From the sequence record MG752970.1: a stretch of DNA of 64,000 bases; one strand, 5' to 3'. Each line of letters begins with the position of its first letter. Positions within the stretch are counted from its first letter, which is position 1. The notes beneath the pieces were generated by a model that was not told the origin of the DNA, made no database searches, and saw only the letters and a program-made list of their open reading frames with translations. Below, piece after piece: positions 1 to 5,825 of the stretch. The position numbers and the translations under genes are program-made.

Positions 1-333
1 TACGTCAAGATCAAGTACAGCAAAATTGGAAAACAATGGAACCCTGGTTCCAAAGCAACCGTCAGATGCGTTCTAGATAAGGCTTTATCATTCAGTGATA
101 AGCAGCTCATTCGAGAGCAGATGATTGAAAAGTTTTCTCTTAGAGGTTTTTCTTTTGAAGAACAAACTACCGACAAGGAAGACGATGATAAGGATCTAGA
201 AGGAATCAAGATTCAATCAATCGATACTATCGTTGCCGAACTTCTAAATCAAATTGAAGACACGCCATCAATAGATAAATCAACATTGATTGAAATTTTC
301 CAAGGATTAAAAACCGATGAATCTAAAGCTTGA
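1..333 (+). CDS. gp47: C-terminal part of gp47-like (Mre11/SbcD) recombination nuclease, starts upstream of window
   Basis: Frame 1 is open from base 1 (YVKIKYSKIGKQW...) into the 121..333 ORF; overlaps start of gp46 as in T4 47-46. Catalytic N-terminus not visible. Confidence 0.6.
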   Translation, partial: YVKIKYSKIGKQWNPGSKATVRCVLDKALSFSDKQLIREQMIEKFSLRGFSFEEQTTDKEDDDKDLEGIKIQSIDTIVAELLNQIEDTPSIDKSTLIEIFQGLKTDESKA

Positions 334-2059
334 TAAAATACGGCTTCGAAACTTTATGAGTTTCGGAAACAACACCATGGAGATAGATCTTGATCAACCA
401 GGATCTATCCATGTTGTTGGCGTAAATCTCGACAATGCAAATCAGGCAAATGGCATTGGTAAAACAACCATGCTGAATGCTATTTCGTATGCATTCTATG
501 ACAAGCCAATCAGCAAAATCTCTAAGGACAAACTAATCAACATTCGGAATGGTAAGTCGTCAGAAATGATGGTGCAACTTACTTTCGAAAAGGGTGGTAA
601 GTCATATGAGATTACTAGATACCGTGGATCAAAGGTTGACGTTAAGTTCATGTGCGATGGTCAAGACCTTGCACCAAACTCTACCGATAATGTGAATCAA
701 AAAATTCTAGATGTGATTGGGATAAGCTACGAATTATTTTCAAAGATTGTCGTCTTCTCAAAAGAGTCAGTTGACTTTTTGGATATGCCAGTAGGATCAC
801 AGCGCGATCTCATCGAAGAACTTTTCAACATCACCATTCTGTCATCTAAAGCCGAAATACTGAAGAAACAGATCGTATCTACTCAGAAGCAAATTGACAT
901 CCTGAACGTTGAAGTAAAAGCAATCAATGATGCCAACGCATTGCGCGAGAAACAAATAGCCGATGCGGAGAAACGAGTGCTTCAATGGGAAGACAACAAA
1001 GTATCTAAAATTTCTCAGCTAGAGAAAGATAAAAGTGCTTTCAATGGAATTGATTTTGAAGGTCAGATAGAAGCAGTAACATTGCTGACCACACTTCAAC
1101 AATTACTGAGAGATCAAACATCTGCATTGGCATCAGGACAAAGAGATTTCGAAAGACTGCAAAAGAAAGCGAACGATCTAGAATCGGAAAATCGTCATCT
1201 TATTTCCAATACATGCCCGTACTGTAATCAAACTTTCAGTTCTGCAGACAAGGATAAAAAGATCGTTGACAATCAAGCACTCATTGATCAAATTTGTCTT
1301 GAAGCTACCGATATTGCAATGAAAAATGCATCCATCAGTGGTGACATCGCAGGGATTGAAGAGCAGCTAAATGAGGTCAAAACTTTCTGTCAGTATTCAA
1401 GCGTCAAGGAAATCACGACTCTTAAGTCGCATTTTGATTCGATCGATAGTCAAATAACACAACTGAATTCTACCGACAATCCACATCTTGAGGCTTATGC
1501 GGCACTTCTCGATAGTCCAATTCAAGAAAATAAGACGGAAGATCTTGATAAGGCAGTTAAACAGTTAGAGCACATGAAGTTTCTTCTGAAGCTGCTCACA
1601 GACAAGAAGTCATTCATACGTAAAGCTATTATCAGTCGCACTCTTCCGTTCATGAACAAGCGACTTCAAGATCACGTTAAGGCACTTGAGCTACCGCATG
1701 ACGTGGCTTTCGATTCTGACATGACGTGTATCGTACATAAGAATGGTATTTCTTTGGATTATGGAAACATGTCTGCTGGAGAAAAGCAAAGAGCAAACCT
1801 AGCTCTAGCATTTACTTTCAGAGATGTACTTCAGAACCTGCATACTCCTATTAATGCCATGTTTATGGATGAGGTTGATGGTGGTTCACTCGACACCAAT
1901 GGTATGGACTGTGTTCTTAGATTGATCAAGCAGAAATCAAGAGATGATGGACTTACCATTTGGGTTATCTCTCATCGACAGGAAGTGGTTAATAGATTGG
2001 ATAAGATTATGACTATTTTCAAAGAAAATGATTTCGTATCGAATATAGAGTGGACATAA
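317..2059 (+). CDS. gp46: gp46-like Rad50/SbcC ATPase
   Basis: LRNFMSFGN start, Walker A (NGIGKTT), coiled coil with CPYC zinc hook, signature MSAGEKQR, Walker B MFMDE, ISH motif. Confidence 0.93.
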   Translation: MNLKLDKIRLRNFMSFGNNTMEIDLDQPGSIHVVGVNLDNANQANGIGKTTMLNAISYAFYDKPISKISKDKLINIRNGKSSEMMVQLTFEKGGKSYEITRYRGSKVDVKFMCDGQDLAPNSTDNVNQKILDVIGISYELFSKIVVFSKESVDFLDMPVGSQRDLIEELFNITILSSKAEILKKQIVSTQKQIDILNVEVKAINDANALREKQIADAEKRVLQWEDNKVSKISQLEKDKSAFNGIDFEGQIEAVTLLTTLQQLLRDQTSALASGQRDFERLQKKANDLESENRHLISNTCPYCNQTFSSADKDKKIVDNQALIDQICLEATDIAMKNASISGDIAGIEEQLNEVKTFCQYSSVKEITTLKSHFDSIDSQITQLNSTDNPHLEAYAALLDSPIQENKTEDLDKAVKQLEHMKFLLKLLTDKKSFIRKAIISRTLPFMNKRLQDHVKALELPHDVAFDSDMTCIVHKNGISLDYGNMSAGEKQRANLALAFTFRDVLQNLHTPINAMFMDEVDGGSLDTNGMDCVLRLIKQKSRDDGLTIWVISHRQEVVNRLDKIMTIFKENDFVSNIEWT

Positions 2060-2080
2060 AATCATTCTTATTCCTAAACC

Positions 2081-2108
2081 AGGGACCCATATGGGTCCCT
2101 TTTTATTT
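2081..2108 (+). terminator. Intrinsic terminator after gp46
   Basis: Perfect palindrome AGGGACCCATATGGGTCCCT followed by T tract. Confidence 0.85.
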
Positions 2109-2116
2109 TGGTCCTA

Positions 2117-2123
2117 ATAAATA
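2117..2123 (+). promoter_or_regulatory. Late promoter box ATAAATA
   Basis: Core of T4 gp55 late promoter TATAAATA; recurs upstream of many genes here. Confidence 0.65.
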
Positions 2124-2169
2124 TTTCCATGCTGGTTTCAATCAGTAACAATTCGAAAATATTTTCCAT

Positions 2170-2727
2170 ATGGCCACAAATAAGAATAAACCGACGGCAG
2201 AAAAGAAGACGAAGCGTGTCGACAGTCGTGCCAAGGGTGCTGGGTTTGAACGCACCCTATCAAAATTTCTATCTGAAAAATTGAACCCGCTTAAATTTAC
2301 CCGTTCTCAAATGTCTGGGGCGATTGTTGGTGGTGTGAATTACGAAAAGGTAGGAGCAAACTACAAGCGTGAAGCATTACGACTCTTTGTAGGTGATGTA
2401 GTTCCAACCAACGAAGGTGAAAATGGAATCAGTTTCAACTTCAGCGTTGAAGCGAAGTTCTATAAAACAGTTCCAACCATGAAGCAGTTGTTTGATGATA
2501 CGTGCCTCGTGTATGGTTGGATGGAAGAAGCCATAATTGATGCTGCGAAGCTCGATGTACATCCTATCGTAATATTCAAGTTCAACAACACTCCCATCTT
2601 TACTGCAACTCCCAGTCACATCGCCATTCCAGATGGAGTCAATCACACCAAGTTAAAAAATGGCATCAATGTTTGCATGCTAGATGATCTCATACAGCAT
2701 TTGGATTTTTGGGTTACCAAAGCATGA
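2170..2727 (+). CDS. Hjc-like PD-(D/E)XK Holliday junction resolvase
   Basis: KGAGFER motif, GDVV, VEAK catalytic motif; next to gp46/47. Confidence 0.75.
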   Translation: MATNKNKPTAEKKTKRVDSRAKGAGFERTLSKFLSEKLNPLKFTRSQMSGAIVGGVNYEKVGANYKREALRLFVGDVVPTNEGENGISFNFSVEAKFYKTVPTMKQLFDDTCLVYGWMEEAIIDAAKLDVHPIVIFKFNNTPIFTATPSHIAIPDGVNHTKLKNGINVCMLDDLIQHLDFWVTKA

Positions 2728-3365
2728 AAGAATCTAATGTGTATCGCACAAATGTGTATAGGGCTGCGGGCGTTGGGATGCTCGATTTAGTAGATAGATT
2801 AACTGGTAGTCTTCTAACATACAAATCTTTGGTTGACTATACCAGCCCACTAATCTCAAAGAATACCAACAATTCATTCTTCTACATATCGGATGATGAA
2901 CTGAAAGACAATGTGAAGAGACATCACTTAATGAACCCCATTATGTTCACCAAGATGATCTCTTCAACCGTCAAACATTTCAAAAATACGAAATATAGAG
3001 TAAAATTGGCAGAGCCACATCCACTTACTCATCGATCTTTTCAAATAGCATCCGATTTATTCACGCTAGATAAGATAGATACTAATGAATACCTAGATGG
3101 AGTAGGATCACGAAAGAGAAACTATACCGTCAAGAGTGTTCATCGGGTGTCAAGCTCACTAGTAGCCGATTTCTACATTGAAAACCTAAGAGATGGTTCT
3201 TATTCTCACCTGATTTTAAGACCAAAGTTTGGACATGGATCCGCCAAACTGACAGAATGGGAAGTCGTTATTCATAAAACAGTCCAAGATTCATACTTGA
3301 TCACCCACATTGACACCGATCTAGAGATCAAGGATCTTAAGCATTTCGCAAACAGAGGAATTTAA
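2724..3365 (+). CDS. Hypothetical protein, possibly TnpB N-terminal (REC/WED)-like, no RuvC domain
   Basis: ATGA overlap with resolvase stop supports start at 2724; TnpB resemblance is architectural only. Confidence 0.6.
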   Translation: MKESNVYRTNVYRAAGVGMLDLVDRLTGSLLTYKSLVDYTSPLISKNTNNSFFYISDDELKDNVKRHHLMNPIMFTKMISSTVKHFKNTKYRVKLAEPHPLTHRSFQIASDLFTLDKIDTNEYLDGVGSRKRNYTVKSVHRVSSSLVADFYIENLRDGSYSHLILRPKFGHGSAKLTEWEVVIHKTVQDSYLITHIDTDLEIKDLKHFANRGI

Positions 3366-3623
3366 ATGAACGCAAAGAAAGCAAAGCAACTACGCCGTAT
3401 GGCCCGTGAAGTAGCGCAAGCAGCTCAATTACCTGAAGGCGCCGTATACGATGAAAAGGAATATTTAGTTCCTAACATGCAGAAGTTTATGACCATGACT
3501 GAGCGGGAAGCAGAAGATCGTGCTAGAGTTACGGCACGCGATATTTCAGATGTACACGTCACCCGTACTCTGAATGCAGATTGCGAACGCGCTCTATATC
3601 AGCGCCTGAAAGCCGCTGTTTGA
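3366..3623 (+). CDS. Small basic hypothetical protein
   Basis: 85 aa ORF abutting upstream stop, followed by terminator. Confidence 0.75.
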   Translation: MNAKKAKQLRRMAREVAQAAQLPEGAVYDEKEYLVPNMQKFMTMTEREAEDRARVTARDISDVHVTRTLNADCERALYQRLKAAV

Positions 3624-3636
3624 TTTTTCTAAGAAT

Positions 3637-3664
3637 ATGGCACCATCCTGTGGTGCCATTCTTT
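3637..3664 (+). terminator. Intrinsic terminator
   Basis: ATGGCACCA-tcctg-TGGTGCCAT then TCTTT. Confidence 0.7.
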
Positions 3665-3679
3665 AAATTAAATCAAACA

Positions 3680-4170
3680 TCCGTTTCGCTGCCTTTGTCA
3701 GGATGCTAGTCACGAAACGATTCAAGTGAGTTCTTGAATGTAAAGATGGTTCATCGAACATATCGATGACGCTGAATAACCCAGTTACAAAATATAACAA
3801 AGAATTCAGGGAGCCGATCCAGTCAAACGGAGCCCCCTTGGTAGAGTAGCAGCCCTATGGTTATTGTAGAAGTTGCAGATGCTATCAAAAACAATCGAGC
3901 AAGCTAGAGACGGTTCTTGATATGGCGCAATGCTTAAAATGATGGTTGAATGTCCGTTACCATCAATGCTCGTATACTAAAACTCAAGTATATAAAATAT
4001 TCCAGATCAGCAAATACAGATTTTGCTGGATAACTAAATCGTTAATGGTTGCGATTTAGTGAAGATCGGCGTCAACGACACCACGCAAGAAGCACAACCG
4101 GTAAAGCGTTACCTGGACGGGTTGAAGAGAAATCTTCTGAAGTGCGAACCATTATTTGAAGCATCCCGAA
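3680..4170 (+). ncRNA. Candidate large structured non-coding RNA (strand not established)
   Basis: No credible ORF; many hairpins (3720-3739, 3751-3769, 3940-3965, 4008-4028, 4033-4060, 4095-4124, 4124-4137 with GAAA loop) and nested long-range complements 3701-3707/4160-4166 and 3746-3752/4146-4152. Confidence 0.4.
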
Positions 4171-4763
4171 TTTTTTGCGCCGAGGCAGGCGCTCTGGTGT
4201 TCCCCAATCGTCTTACGATTAAGATCGTAATCATTAAGAAGAAACAAAAATTCCCCATGACGATCATTGCAAGAACGAACGCCAGTGAGTGATGCAATGA
4301 GACGTCGAGCAAGCGACAGCTGCTCTGATCTAGTCGACTAGATCAATATTGTAGGAAGAAGTCACAAACCAAAGAATGAAATATACATGAGTTTGGACCT
4401 GCATTAAATAGAAATACATCCTGGCAGTACTTTAATGGAAACTGACTTAACTCACCAGTTTCCATTATTTTTGCGCCGGATCCGGCCAAATAGGCAAAAG
4501 GAGCGGCAAGAAGACACCGCTCAGCTATCGATCATGGCCGCTCACTGGCGTTCGCTTCCATTCCGAAGCTTGTGGGTTCTATCTGTCTATATTGGCAGCT
4601 GATACCCATCTGATCTATCTGGTGCATCTCCGTTCATTCCTGTCTCGAATTGACACATACCACATCATCCGTCTGACCCAATTCATCTGGACACCTCTGG
4701 AGAGGCCATGCCCAGTTGTTCAGAACTAGAAACTCGTTCCGGATCCTAAGATTTAGATAAGAG
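4170..4763. other. Palindrome/hairpin-rich non-coding element, origin-like or RNA switch
   Basis: 20-bp perfect palindrome 4326-4345, 12-bp stem 4433-4467, 14-nt complement 4276-4289/4541-4554, direct repeat TTTTTGCGCCG at 4172 and 4468. Confidence 0.5.
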
Positions 4764-4787
4764 AAAAGGAGCCTTTCGGCTCCTTTT
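4764..4787 (-). terminator. Intrinsic terminator for the gp26-like unit
   Basis: Minus strand AAAAGGAGCC-GAAA-GGCTCCTTTT, overlapping stop of the -1 frame extension. Confidence 0.85.
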
Positions 4788-5034
4788 ACAGTGATGCAAC
4801 CAGCTTTTCCATCCATGTCTTTCCTTTTATGATACCTTCTCGTTTCTTAGTTAGAAACTCAACGGCTAGTTCTCTTTCTGCAGCTGACATCATTAAGACG
4901 TCTTCGTATTTTAAGGAACCTTTTGAATAAAAGGAAATTTCTAGAGCACTCTTGATTAGATTTTCCGTATCCTTTGCAAAATAGCTGATTGTTCTCGTGA
5001 TTAGATGATAATCACGAGACCGTATTACTCGGAA
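4786..5034 (-). CDS. -1 frame extension of gp26-like chaperone (82 aa, missed by ORF track)
   Basis: Open -1 frame after T9 run: FRVIRSRDY...ISFYSKGSLKYEDVLMMSAAERE...LVASL*, no Met in its first 47 codons; ends in a terminator. Confidence 0.7.
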   Translation of the reverse strand, partial: FRVIRSRDYHLITRTISYFAKDTENLIKSALEISFYSKGSLKYEDVLMMSAAERELAVEFLTKKREGIIKGKTWMEKLVASL

Positions 5035-5825
5035 AAAAAAACTATCGGGTTGGTTGGGAGATCAACTTGGAATGGCTGTCCACAATCCTTGCAAGTCAAT
5101 GTGACTTGCTGCTGAGTTCCCCACGCTGAGGCGTTTTCAATGGCTGAACCAATCAAATTCACATCCTTGGTGCTCAGATATCTAGCCCATTCACCAATCA
5201 TTGCCTTATCTGTGACGTTGTCCACAGAGTATATGATTGAGCATAGATTTTTTAGAATGTTGTCTTGAATATCTTCAACACTGGTTTCAGAATCTAATCC
5301 ACCTTGAGCTGAACGCTGCATTAGCTCTACTAGATTCTTATAACGTAGTGGCTCAAGCTTTACACTCTGACCGGTACTAATTGTCACGGTTGACTGCTCG
5401 TTGATTGTGGTTGGATCTAATTCGCGAATGTTCTTTACGAACTCATCAAGATCTACTTCGTAAGAATGTGATTCGGCTTTCTCACAATTATGCTCTGCGT
5501 CGACAGAAAATTTTGAACCGTACGTTGCAACTCTTAGGAAGACCATCAGTGCATCAACATCTTTACCAAATAGTTCATTAGGTTTCTTGATGTCTGGAAT
5601 GCACTCTGCGAAGACTTCATCGATTGCTCTACCAGAGAACAACATGTCGATGTTCTTGAGTTTAATTTCCGCTATAGCCGAAAGTGGATGAACGTGGACT
5701 TCGCCATTTGCTACGTTAGGTCCTAGTTCACCGTTTTGATACAAGTGGCCACCAGATGGAAGCTTGAACACTCGTCCAGGTAGTTTAATTTTTGCTAGGA
5801 GGGGGTTTGTAATTGCTGAATCCAT
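5025..5825 (-). CDS. gp26: gp26-like baseplate hub / tail assembly chaperone
   Basis: LPSGGHLY N-terminus, VFLRVATYG, internal HNC and C-terminal CKDC zinc-like motif; adjacent to tape measure. Confidence 0.75.
   Translation of the reverse strand: MDSAITNPLLAKIKLPGRVFKLPSGGHLYQNGELGPNVANGEVHVHPLSAIAEIKLKNIDMLFSGRAIDEVFAECIPDIKKPNELFGKDVDALMVFLRVATYGSKFSVDAEHNCEKAESHSYEVDLDEFVKNIRELDPTTINEQSTVTISTGQSVKLEPLRYKNLVELMQRSAQGGLDSETSVEDIQDNILKNLCSIIYSVDNVTDKAMIGEWARYLSTKDVNLIGSAIENASAWGTQQQVTLTCKDCGQPFQVDLPTNPIVFFSE

Follow-up and report, generated by a model that had tools for sequence, protein, structure and literature searches.

TnpB of the IS200/IS605 elements (OrfB, for example ISDra2 TnpB, PDB 8ex9/8h1j) and miniature Cas12f are characterized by a WED barrel, the first strand of which is split off by an inserted REC lobe. 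In the exaptations of TnpB and Cas12 as described, the RuvC domain is kept, either active or dead (PMC10691335). TldR and other nuclease-dead exapted TnpBs have an inactivated RuvC and retain an omega-type guide in the 3' UTR (PMC10691335; bioRxiv 10.64898/2026.09.22.753285). The Hjc/RecU resolvases belong to another group of nucleases, with a PD-(D/E)XK core containing the D...ExK motif, and the phage-encoded RNAs GOLLD and ROOL, represented in Rfam, comprise several hundred nucleotides with many helices and no known coding role. A locus of the Ralstonia jumbo phage RsoM2USA is described here, in which the gene of a basic protein, gp373, with a predicted fold of the N-terminal half of TnpB/Cas12f, is located next to the gene of an Hjc-like nuclease and upstream of a large structured RNA.

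Organization of the locus

The window, i.e., the whole analysed stretch of 64,000 nt, corresponds to positions 248001-312000 of record MG752970, the genome of phage RsoM2USA (343,806 bp; designated W). Coordinates refer to positions within the window, and L-numbers designate related loci or lineages. The following features were recognized:

317..2059, + strand: gp371, SbcC/Rad50-like (T4 gp46-like) recombination nuclease subunit, upstream of the cassette
2170..2727, + strand: gp372, predicted PD-(D/E)XK nuclease resembling the Holliday junction resolvases Hjc/RecU
2724..3365, + strand: gp373, 213 aa, predicted standalone WED and REC protein with the fold of the TnpB/Cas12f N-terminal half, without RuvC or TNB
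3366..3623, + strand: gp374, 85 aa, pI 9.25, small basic protein, third gene of the cassette
3637..3659, + strand: intrinsic terminator with a 10-bp stem and, 3' of it, a T-rich tail, ending the gp371-gp374 transcription unit
3760..4360, + strand: core of the putative structured non-coding RNA, about 600 nt, conserved, with 11 proposed helices and without an Rfam family
4361..4763, no strand assigned: variable non-coding stretch with local hairpins, outside the conserved RNA core
4764..4787, no strand assigned: terminator hairpin, bidirectional, separating the + strand unit from the baseplate genes convergent with it

The product of gp371 matches PF02463 SMC_N (5.9e-16) and AAA_23, its tblastn matches carry the annotation of a recombination endonuclease subunit, and in relatives its counterpart is preceded by a Metallophos (gp47-like) gene. 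The start codon of gp373 overlaps the stop codon of gp372 as ATGA, and an overlapping stop/start between the nuclease gene and gp373 is present in most lineages. Homologues of gp374, with the motifs M-N-x-K-x-x-K-x-x-R at the N-terminus and Y..LK at the C-terminus, were found 3' of gp373 in W, L013, L012, L003, L011, L006, L008 and L009; searches of gp374 in Pfam and PDB gave no match. GenBank annotation of the 1.4-kb region 3624-5024 contains no genes. Thus, the gene order read in the original prediction, a PD-(D/E)XK nuclease coupled through ATGA to a 213-aa protein and followed by a small basic protein and a non-coding block, was confirmed.

Hairpins at the position equivalent to 3637-3659 are present in L003 and L011; the hairpin at 4764-4787 matches terminators of many phages and has an equivalent in L011. 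The interpretation of the 1.4-kb gap as a decayed gene was rejected, because stop codons occur in all frames and the best conserved part contains no open frame.

In a clade of RsoM2USA-like jumbo phages, the cassette of the nuclease, gp373 and the small protein is conserved and follows the gp47/gp46 (Mre11/Rad50-like) genes. The PDDEXK_15 gene is located immediately 5' of the gp373 homologue in W, L003, L007, L011, L012, L013, L009, L049 and L051 and one gene away from it in L053, while in L008 the neighbour is a gene of Endonuclease VII resolvase instead of PDDEXK_15. Since all cassette lineages are syntenic relatives, the adjacency of the nuclease and gp373 may be an inherited arrangement of genes and need not reflect a functional coupling. 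A search for further loci with a narrower alignment revealed one metagenome locus and none in IMG/VR, and the motif-B DNA pattern had no match in IMG/VR.

Nuclease gp372

The protein gp372 matches the Hjc-like model PF24608 PDDEXK_15 (E 5.3e-20) and belongs to PHROG 244, annotated as resolvase; residues D76 and E94-x-K96 are invariant (7 homologues). The best PDB matches of its AF2 model (pLDDT 81.9) in Foldseek are archaeal Hjc proteins, with a probability of 0.99-1.0 and TM of 0.5-0.58 by target. According to the motif and the model, gp372 is predicted to have the PD-(D/E)XK catalytic motif, D...ExK, and an Hjc-like fold. It resembles Hjc/RecU also as a predicted resolvase whose gene adjoins Mre11/Rad50-like genes, but, unlike them, it has at its N-terminus a basic tail of ~22 residues, which is disordered, and a further part at its C-terminus.

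Fold and family of gp373

The AF2 model of gp373 (pLDDT 87.6, pTM 0.84) starts with a short N-terminal strand (residues 6-12), continues with helices (20-88) and then with strands, including the hairpin 162-170/173-184, which bears HLILRP...WEVVI. This is the layout guessed from the letters in the original prediction. The WED domain comprises residues ~6-12 plus 106-184 and REC the helices ~20-88; the chain passes through the first WED strand, the inserted REC and the rest of the barrel, which is an unusual order.

In the Foldseek search against PDB the best 15 matches of gp373 are all Cas12f, TnpB or Cas12, and the searches against BFVD and AFDB gave matches to the same TnpB/Cas12 family. VIA-align aligned 150/166 residues with ISDra2 TnpB 8ex9_A at Z 10.5; its top 26 rows are all type V/TnpB, and the next one has Z 2.9. 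In an unbiased scan of 48,161 PDB chains, independent of Foldseek, ranks 1-30 are all occupied by TnpB, Fanzor and Cas12 (Z 10.4-5.2), and the first unrelated match has Z 4.5 over 55 residues. In the shape search of the ESM Atlas, TnpB accounts for the four best clusters, with TM 0.54-0.57, and the next has 0.34. The matched lobes in the structural alignments are both WED and REC, and the alignments end at TnpB residues ~173-211. The likeness to the N-terminal half of TnpB up to the start of RuvC, noticed earlier by eye, was therefore borne out at the level of the fold, including the structural match to TnpB/Cas12f in Foldseek: as modelled, gp373 shares the WED and REC architecture of this half and ends, at residue 213 immediately past the WED barrel, where RuvC would start.

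The gp373 family includes ~25 proteins among 1.8 billion representatives; all of them are 195-241 aa long and basic (pI 8.8-9.8). As originally proposed for the 213-aa protein, they are RuvC-less: neither a split RuvC nuclease domain with its D-E-D triad nor a TNB part is present in any of the ~25 homologues. None of the 26 family members matched Pfam, including the TnpB profiles PF12323 and PF01385, at E up to 5; the searches of gp373 in PHROGs and, by profile, in PDB were both empty, and tblastn against 50,697 phages returned only RsoM2USA itself. The TNB profile PF07282, which finds matches in 8 control genomes under identical search conditions, has none in the phage genome (343,806 bp); no tnpA is present in the phage genome. 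Long repetitive proteins (P0013, P0026-28) were considered as relatives of gp373 and set aside as probably spurious; they match only residues ~95-149 and contain many repeats.

Thus, gp373 resembles TnpB and Cas12f in the WED barrel interrupted by REC, in the 150-158 superposed residues (Z ~10) and in its basic charge. Unlike these proteins, it has no RuvC, no TNB zinc finger, no IS ends and no detectable sequence similarity to them; unlike TnpB, it is non-mobile, with a single copy in a fixed syntenic place beside a PD-(D/E)XK nuclease gene. With TldR and other nuclease-dead TnpBs it would share a TnpB-type scaffold without DNA cutting, the fixed locus and a non-transposon role, but it lacks the entire RuvC/TNB half and is coupled to a separate nuclease gene.

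Because no link was found at the sequence level, homology of gp373 and TnpB rests on predicted structure. The likeness could then be structural only, resulting from convergence or from a very old shared module, with gp373 being an ordinary phage DNA-binding or regulatory protein in an inherited gene order. Such an origin would agree with the failure of any sequence method to detect TnpB, with the identity of 6-12% in structural alignments and with the carriers being syntenic relatives in one phage clade. It is nevertheless considered unlikely: a single superfamily is matched over both lobes and in the unusual topology with inserted REC, 30 consecutive matches belong to this superfamily before another fold appears, and four independent libraries concur.

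Large structured RNA

In the RNA core, five helices were modelled in 3890-4065 and six in 4066-4216. Comparison with L013 revealed 16 differences in 600 nt (2.7%), i.e., 97-98% identity, while divergence is ~20% in both flanks of the core and 10-23% in the neighbouring genes. The MAFFT alignments were out of register and for this reason yielded hardly any consensus in RNAalifold; therefore, covariance models (CMs) built from hand-proposed helices were used. Single-sequence CMs recover L003 at the syntenic place with E 4e-4 and 5e-9. Relative to L003, pairs changed on both sides and still pairing account for 18/34 and 7/25 (25/59 in total), the counts being taken from alignments fitted by CM for two divergent lineages only. 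Paired cells in the RNA models make up 97-98%, versus 20-46% in slid controls. The GNRA loops and G-U pairs are compatible with the + strand only, and one metatranscriptome contig of 246 nt maps to 4049-4295.

The CMs reach L003 and do not reach L011, L007 and L051, for which RNA homology consequently rests on collinear motifs and on hairpins recognized by eye. The motifs are the hairpin loop AAYGUCY, AUUCCAGAU and GUAA-N6-ACCUGGA. The search in Rfam 15 with the sequences of W, L003, L007 and L011 revealed nothing at gathering score and nothing related at E up to 10; weak matches to ncr1015, snoRNAs and c-di-GMP-II, the latter over the terminator, were attributed to chance.

Judging by these comparisons of sequences, the 3760-4360 element appears to be a genuine RNA of the + strand, folded and under strong selection, that represents a new family. 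The structured block of the original prediction corresponds to this RNA, for which covariation and conservation provide evidence, although the end coordinate given there, 4170, cuts the core, which reaches ~4360. The RNA is similar to GOLLD and ROOL in size, number of helices, phage origin and the absence of a known coding role, as well as in being conserved more strongly than the neighbouring genes, but it matches no Rfam model and has other sequence motifs.

The stretch 4361-4763 has 78-88% identity with L013, with clustered changes, and no counterpart in the block of L003. One base of the 14-nt inverted repeat 4276-4289/4541-4554 is lost in L013. A perfect 20-nt palindrome is located at ~4326-4347.

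Association of the RNA with the cassette

The RNA is located ~400 nt 3' of gp373 on the same strand in five lineages, namely, the W-type phages, L003, L007, L011 and L051, so a functional link with the cassette is possible. It is absent at this site in four lineages bearing gp373 (L049, L053, L008 and L009), of which L049, L053 and L009 contain the gp373 homologue together with the nuclease. Exact matches between 3624-4800 and the rest of the phage genome are at most 15 nt long, the same as in shuffled sequences, and thus reveal no guide-like complementarity. The original proposal of a single RNA-guided module was not supported by these results, gp373 being found without the downstream block at this site in the four lineages, which is an outcome named in that prediction as refuting it. 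The predicted complex of gp372 and gp373 had a score of 0.10, which is below the mark and speaks neither for nor against a complex.

In a split RNA-guided nuclease, gp373 would load the adjacent RNA, or a piece processed from it, as an omega-RNA-like guide, and the Hjc-like nuclease would replace RuvC in trans. The nature of the lobes is consistent with this, as in TnpB both the TAM duplex and the guide-target heteroduplex are held by WED and REC; so are the translational overlap of the nuclease gene with gp373, the conserved structured RNA downstream in five lineages and the contig from an RNA library. Against it, four lineages keep gp373 without the RNA at the site, and the neighbour in L008 is Endonuclease VII; a terminator and a protein gene stand between gp373 and the RNA; and the RNA, ~600 nt long, is 3-4x the size of omega RNA, hardly varies over its length from strain to strain, shows no evident variable guide, and has no match longer than 15 nt in the rest of the phage genome. 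Moreover, RuvC, which holds much of the RNA scaffold in known TnpB structures (PMC10097598), is missing here. Such an arrangement is therefore regarded as quite improbable.

An equally low probability is assigned to gp373 as a protein partner of the large RNA, a chaperone or RNP core with no tie to the nuclease, acting, for example, in regulation or host takeover. The basic charge of the family, a fold that is RNA-binding in all known relatives and the position of the RNA next to the cassette in five lineages would fit this role, but the RNA is missing at the site in four lineages, and the tightest conserved link of gp373 is with the nuclease gene, by stop/start overlap in most lineages.

In T4-type origins the transcript forms an R-loop. 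Action of the block as DNA rather than as RNA, as a replication origin or as a packaging site, would agree with its position between convergent units beside recombination genes and with the palindrome, but this is the least probable of the alternatives, since the helices are kept by 25 double compensatory changes, the GNRA loops and G-U pairs are strand-specific, and the contig from an RNA library maps to the block.

Proposed role of gp373

The preferred reading, to which about an even chance is given, is that gp373 is a RuvC-less WED and REC protein and the probable recognition partner of the co-expressed resolvase-type nuclease, while the RNA is more likely independent. The observed basis for it is the fold, the order of the genes, the overlap in translation with the nuclease gene, the basic charge and the lack of a nuclease domain throughout the family.

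On this reading, gp373 would descend from the WED and REC nucleic-acid-recognition lobe of TnpB/Cas12 or be its sister, standing alone and without RuvC, and would be encoded by the middle gene of three, between those of the Hjc-like PD-(D/E)XK nuclease and the small basic protein. Like WED and REC in TnpB, it may bind DNA, either duplex or branched, or RNA-DNA hybrids, and could serve as a substrate-recognition or targeting subunit for gp372 in phage recombination and DNA processing. The ~600-nt RNA would be an independent phage RNA in the gap between two convergent transcription units rather than an obligate guide, because its association with the cassette is facultative.

A bolder interpretation, held to be very improbable, is that the cassette encodes a naturally split RNA-guided nuclease, in which a WED and REC protein that has lost RuvC takes part of the RNA as guide or scaffold and brings the Hjc-type PD-(D/E)XK nuclease to its target, or that a free-standing WED-REC module, the one from which TnpB arose by assembly, survives in this family. 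The split module, if true, would represent a second, independent way to join a TnpB-type recognition lobe and a cutting domain.

Significance

The ~600-nt RNA, unusually strongly conserved and with clear covariation, is a candidate new large structured RNA of phages and merits separate study. A conserved phage family consisting of the recognition half only would demonstrate that this lobe is able to function and evolve by itself, and such a RuvC-less lobe gains in interest through its coupling with a nuclease from another superfamily. With a size of ~210 aa, gp373 is a very small candidate nucleic-acid-recognition module, and its family bears on the assembly of TnpB and on a natural split of recognition and cutting between proteins.

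Gene organization of the locus

Positions 2000-5100 of the window were placed by megablast at 250000-253100 of the genome of Ralstonia phage RsoM2USA (MG752970.1, 343,806 bp) with 100% identity; accordingly, the window position is the record position minus 248000. All genes of this region are annotated as hypothetical proteins, and the paper on phage RsoM2USA makes no mention of a resolvase or of any non-coding or intergenic feature (PMC8504454). The following features were found:

317-2059, + strand: gp371, SMC_N/AAA_23 protein, SbcC/T4 gp46-like
2170-2727, + strand: gp372, PF24608 PDDEXK_15 (E 5e-20)
2724-3365, + strand: gp373, 213 aa, its ATG overlapping the gp372 stop as ATGA
3366-3623, + strand: gp374, 85 aa, pI 9.25
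3637-3659, + strand: terminator, 3' of gp374
5025-5825, - strand: gp375, convergent baseplate-hub gene, PF12322

The 1.4 kb between the terminator and gp375 contain stops in every frame. The original prediction of a nuclease gene, an ATGA-coupled gene for a 213-aa protein, a gene for a basic protein and a non-coding block was confirmed in position and order.

The stretch 4786-5042 (- strand) covers the end of gp375, encoding the gp26-like baseplate hub, and the ORF below it; the hub reading frame closes with ...FFSE*. The hub ends of RsoM2USA and the related lineages L013, L003, L007, L051, L049 and L053 were compared. In all seven, a slippery heptamer, U UUU UUY, precedes the hub stop by 6-9 nt and is correctly in frame, and a conserved ORF of ~75 aa (motif MSAxER[ED]) is open in the -1 frame from the T-run on, headed by ATG or GTG in two of the seven lineages and by GTA or ATA in the others. 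These sequence features fit a programmed -1 frameshift, which would extend the hub protein.

The nuclease gp372

Residues D76 and E94-x-K96 of gp372 are invariant among seven homologues. The best Foldseek matches of its AF2 model (pLDDT 81.9) are archaeal Hjc Holliday-junction resolvases (probability 0.99-1.0), with RecU further down the list. Given the gp47/gp46-like gene neighbours, gp372 is most simply the putative junction-resolving nuclease of the phage. Co-folding of gp372 with gp373 gave a score of 0.10, which is under the mark and counts neither way.

Fold and family of gp373

Searches with the gp373 sequence against Pfam, PHROGs, phages (tblastn) and PDB profiles were empty, and no member of its family matches Pfam. 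When 1.8 billion representatives were searched exhaustively with phmmer, no more than about 25 full-length homologues emerged. They measure 195-241 aa, none being longer, and all are basic; conserved motifs of the family lie near residues 101-105, 162-170 and 179-180.

The AF2 model from the family alignment (pLDDT 87.6, pTM 0.84) consists of a strand (6-12), helices (20-88) and a six-stranded sheet region (106-184). Ranks 1-15 of its Foldseek matches in the PDB are Cas12f, ISDra2 TnpB, Cas12-lambda and Cas12h; matches in BFVD and AFDB clusters are "transposases" of the IS605 OrfB type together with some uncharacterised proteins of jumbo phages, and the ESM Atlas shape search returned four TnpB clusters (TM 0.54-0.57; next 0.34). 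VIA-align re-scoring against 8ex9_A (ISDra2 TnpB, RuvC unresolved) gave Z 10.5 with 150 of 166 residues aligned. A scan that did not rely on Foldseek and covered 48,161 PDB representatives placed nothing but TnpB, Fanzor and Cas12 in ranks 1-30 (Z 10.4 to 5.2); the highest-ranking unrelated chain reached Z 4.5, with some 55 helical residues aligned.

The aligned part of TnpB, residues 1 to about 175, is WED plus REC. Because of this range, the lack of longer homologues and the absence of a TNB domain from the RsoM2USA genome, the modelled gp373 comprises the TnpB/Cas12f recognition half alone. The resemblance to the TnpB N-terminal half, originally proposed by eye, is thus borne out for the predicted fold by all structure libraries, and likely reflects homology rather than convergence.

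The jumbo-phage proteins matched in BFVD (Erwinia phage Yoloswag A0A1S6L3E0, Dickeya phage JA11 A0A386K639 and others; 280-470 aa) showed TM 0.41-0.53 to the WED+REC model; they may represent longer relatives, fused to RuvC or to a different domain.

The conserved RNA element

Conservation was profiled with L013-L016, soil-metagenome relatives close to RsoM2USA (about 88% DNA identity). Identity to the L013-type relative is 89% for gp372, 87% for gp373, 77% for gp374, the fastest-evolving cassette gene (gp372-gp374), and 87% for gp375, versus 97.6-98.3% for 3791-4290. Region 3760-4359 contains 16 differences per 600 nt, while divergence is about 20% in the flanks, 3680-3759 and 4360-4519. The 74%-identity relative L012 is 93% identical over 3791-3923, and Logan contigs aligned to the window showed the same contrast between core and surroundings in two other studies. 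The 3' remainder of the block (4361-4763) varies in sequence and is missing from L003.

Homologous blocks with collinear motifs occupy the same place in L003, L011, L007 and L051. The motifs are a hairpin with the loop AAYGUCY; AUUCCAGAU followed by a hairpin; GUAA-N6-ACCUGGA enclosed by a short helix; and a hairpin followed by UGAAG. Covariance models that used hand-proposed helices and no sequence other than that of RsoM2USA recovered L003 at the syntenic position (5' block, 3890-4065, E 4e-4; 3' block, 4066-4216, E 5e-9) and missed L011, L007 and L051, for which RNA homology was recognized by eye only. Counting only two divergent lineages in alignments fitted to the model, 18 of 34 base pairs (5' block) and 7 of 25 (3' block) changed on both sides yet still pair; 97-98% of cells are paired versus 20-46% with slid partners, and none of 500 shuffles attained the figures of the real alignments. 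Only the + strand shows GNRA tetraloops and G-U pairs. The RNA has no match in Rfam.

The element is single-copy in RsoM2USA. MG752970 has other 0.8-1.4 kb stretches without an ORF of at least 80 aa (182073-183506, 184052-184995, 86602-87572, 104123-104987 and 110876-111741, outside the window), in which search with the 3' model R3 found no copy. A perfect 20-nt palindrome, 4326-4347, marks the 3' edge of the core; since L003 has a hairpin and then a T-run at the equivalent place, the palindrome probably forms the hairpin that ends the RNA on its 3' side.

The sole good match to a root-metagenome RNA-seq library across the 3.8 kb compared is a 246-nt contig on 4049-4295, suggestive of core transcription, with DNA carry-over possible. 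Of 51 words sampled from the core, 2-4 are present in a few wastewater metatranscriptomes.

Distribution of the cassette and its relation to the RNA

Synteny was compared on contigs of ten further lineages. The PDDEXK_15 gene lies immediately 5' of the gp373 homologue, usually overlapping it, in L003, L007, L011, L012, L013, L009, L049 and L051, and at one-gene distance in L053; in L008 the divergent upstream neighbour is a gene for Endonuclease VII, another junction resolvase. Association with a resolvase-type nuclease is the most constant feature of gp373 loci. A gp374-type gene follows gp373 in all lineages with a long enough contig (homologues verified by alignment in RsoM2USA, L013, L012, L003, L011, L006, L008 and L009). 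Since the wider order gp47-gp46-...-cassette-...-baseplate hub is common to most carriers, these form one phage clade, which makes adjacency by itself weak evidence.

An anti-CBASS Acb1 gene (PF23474, 1e-24) lies between the gp46-like gene and PDDEXK_15 in L003 (6857-7342) and L049 (4040-4450); in RsoM2USA this position holds a terminator and nothing else. One plant-metagenome relative (run X8) carries 147 unrelated letters in place of the gp374 3' end and terminator (3479-3626).

The originally predicted pairing of gp373 with the block is refuted in part: L049, L053, L008 and L009 carry gp373 without the block at this site. L049 retains gp47-gp46-Acb1-PDDEXK_15-gp373-small protein, has a 165-aa minus-strand ORF at the RNA position and contains none of the RNA motifs at this site. 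The RNA could be elsewhere in these four genomes. Other features also speak against an obligate guide: the terminator and gp374 lie between gp373 and the RNA, which is far larger than omega RNA, hardly differs from strain to strain, lacks a variable guide-like end and has no match longer than 15 nt elsewhere in the phage genome, the same as shuffles. In view of these points and of the four lineages, a split RNA-guided nuclease, in which gp373 and the nuclease would use the neighbouring RNA as guide, is improbable.

A functional link between the cassette and the RNA is unproven and probably not obligate. Two separate findings are real and unusual: the gp373 family of standalone, RuvC-less TnpB-type WED+REC proteins, which jumbo phages encode in coupling with an Hjc-like nuclease, and the RNA beside the cassette, a new, large, structured and highly conserved phage RNA.
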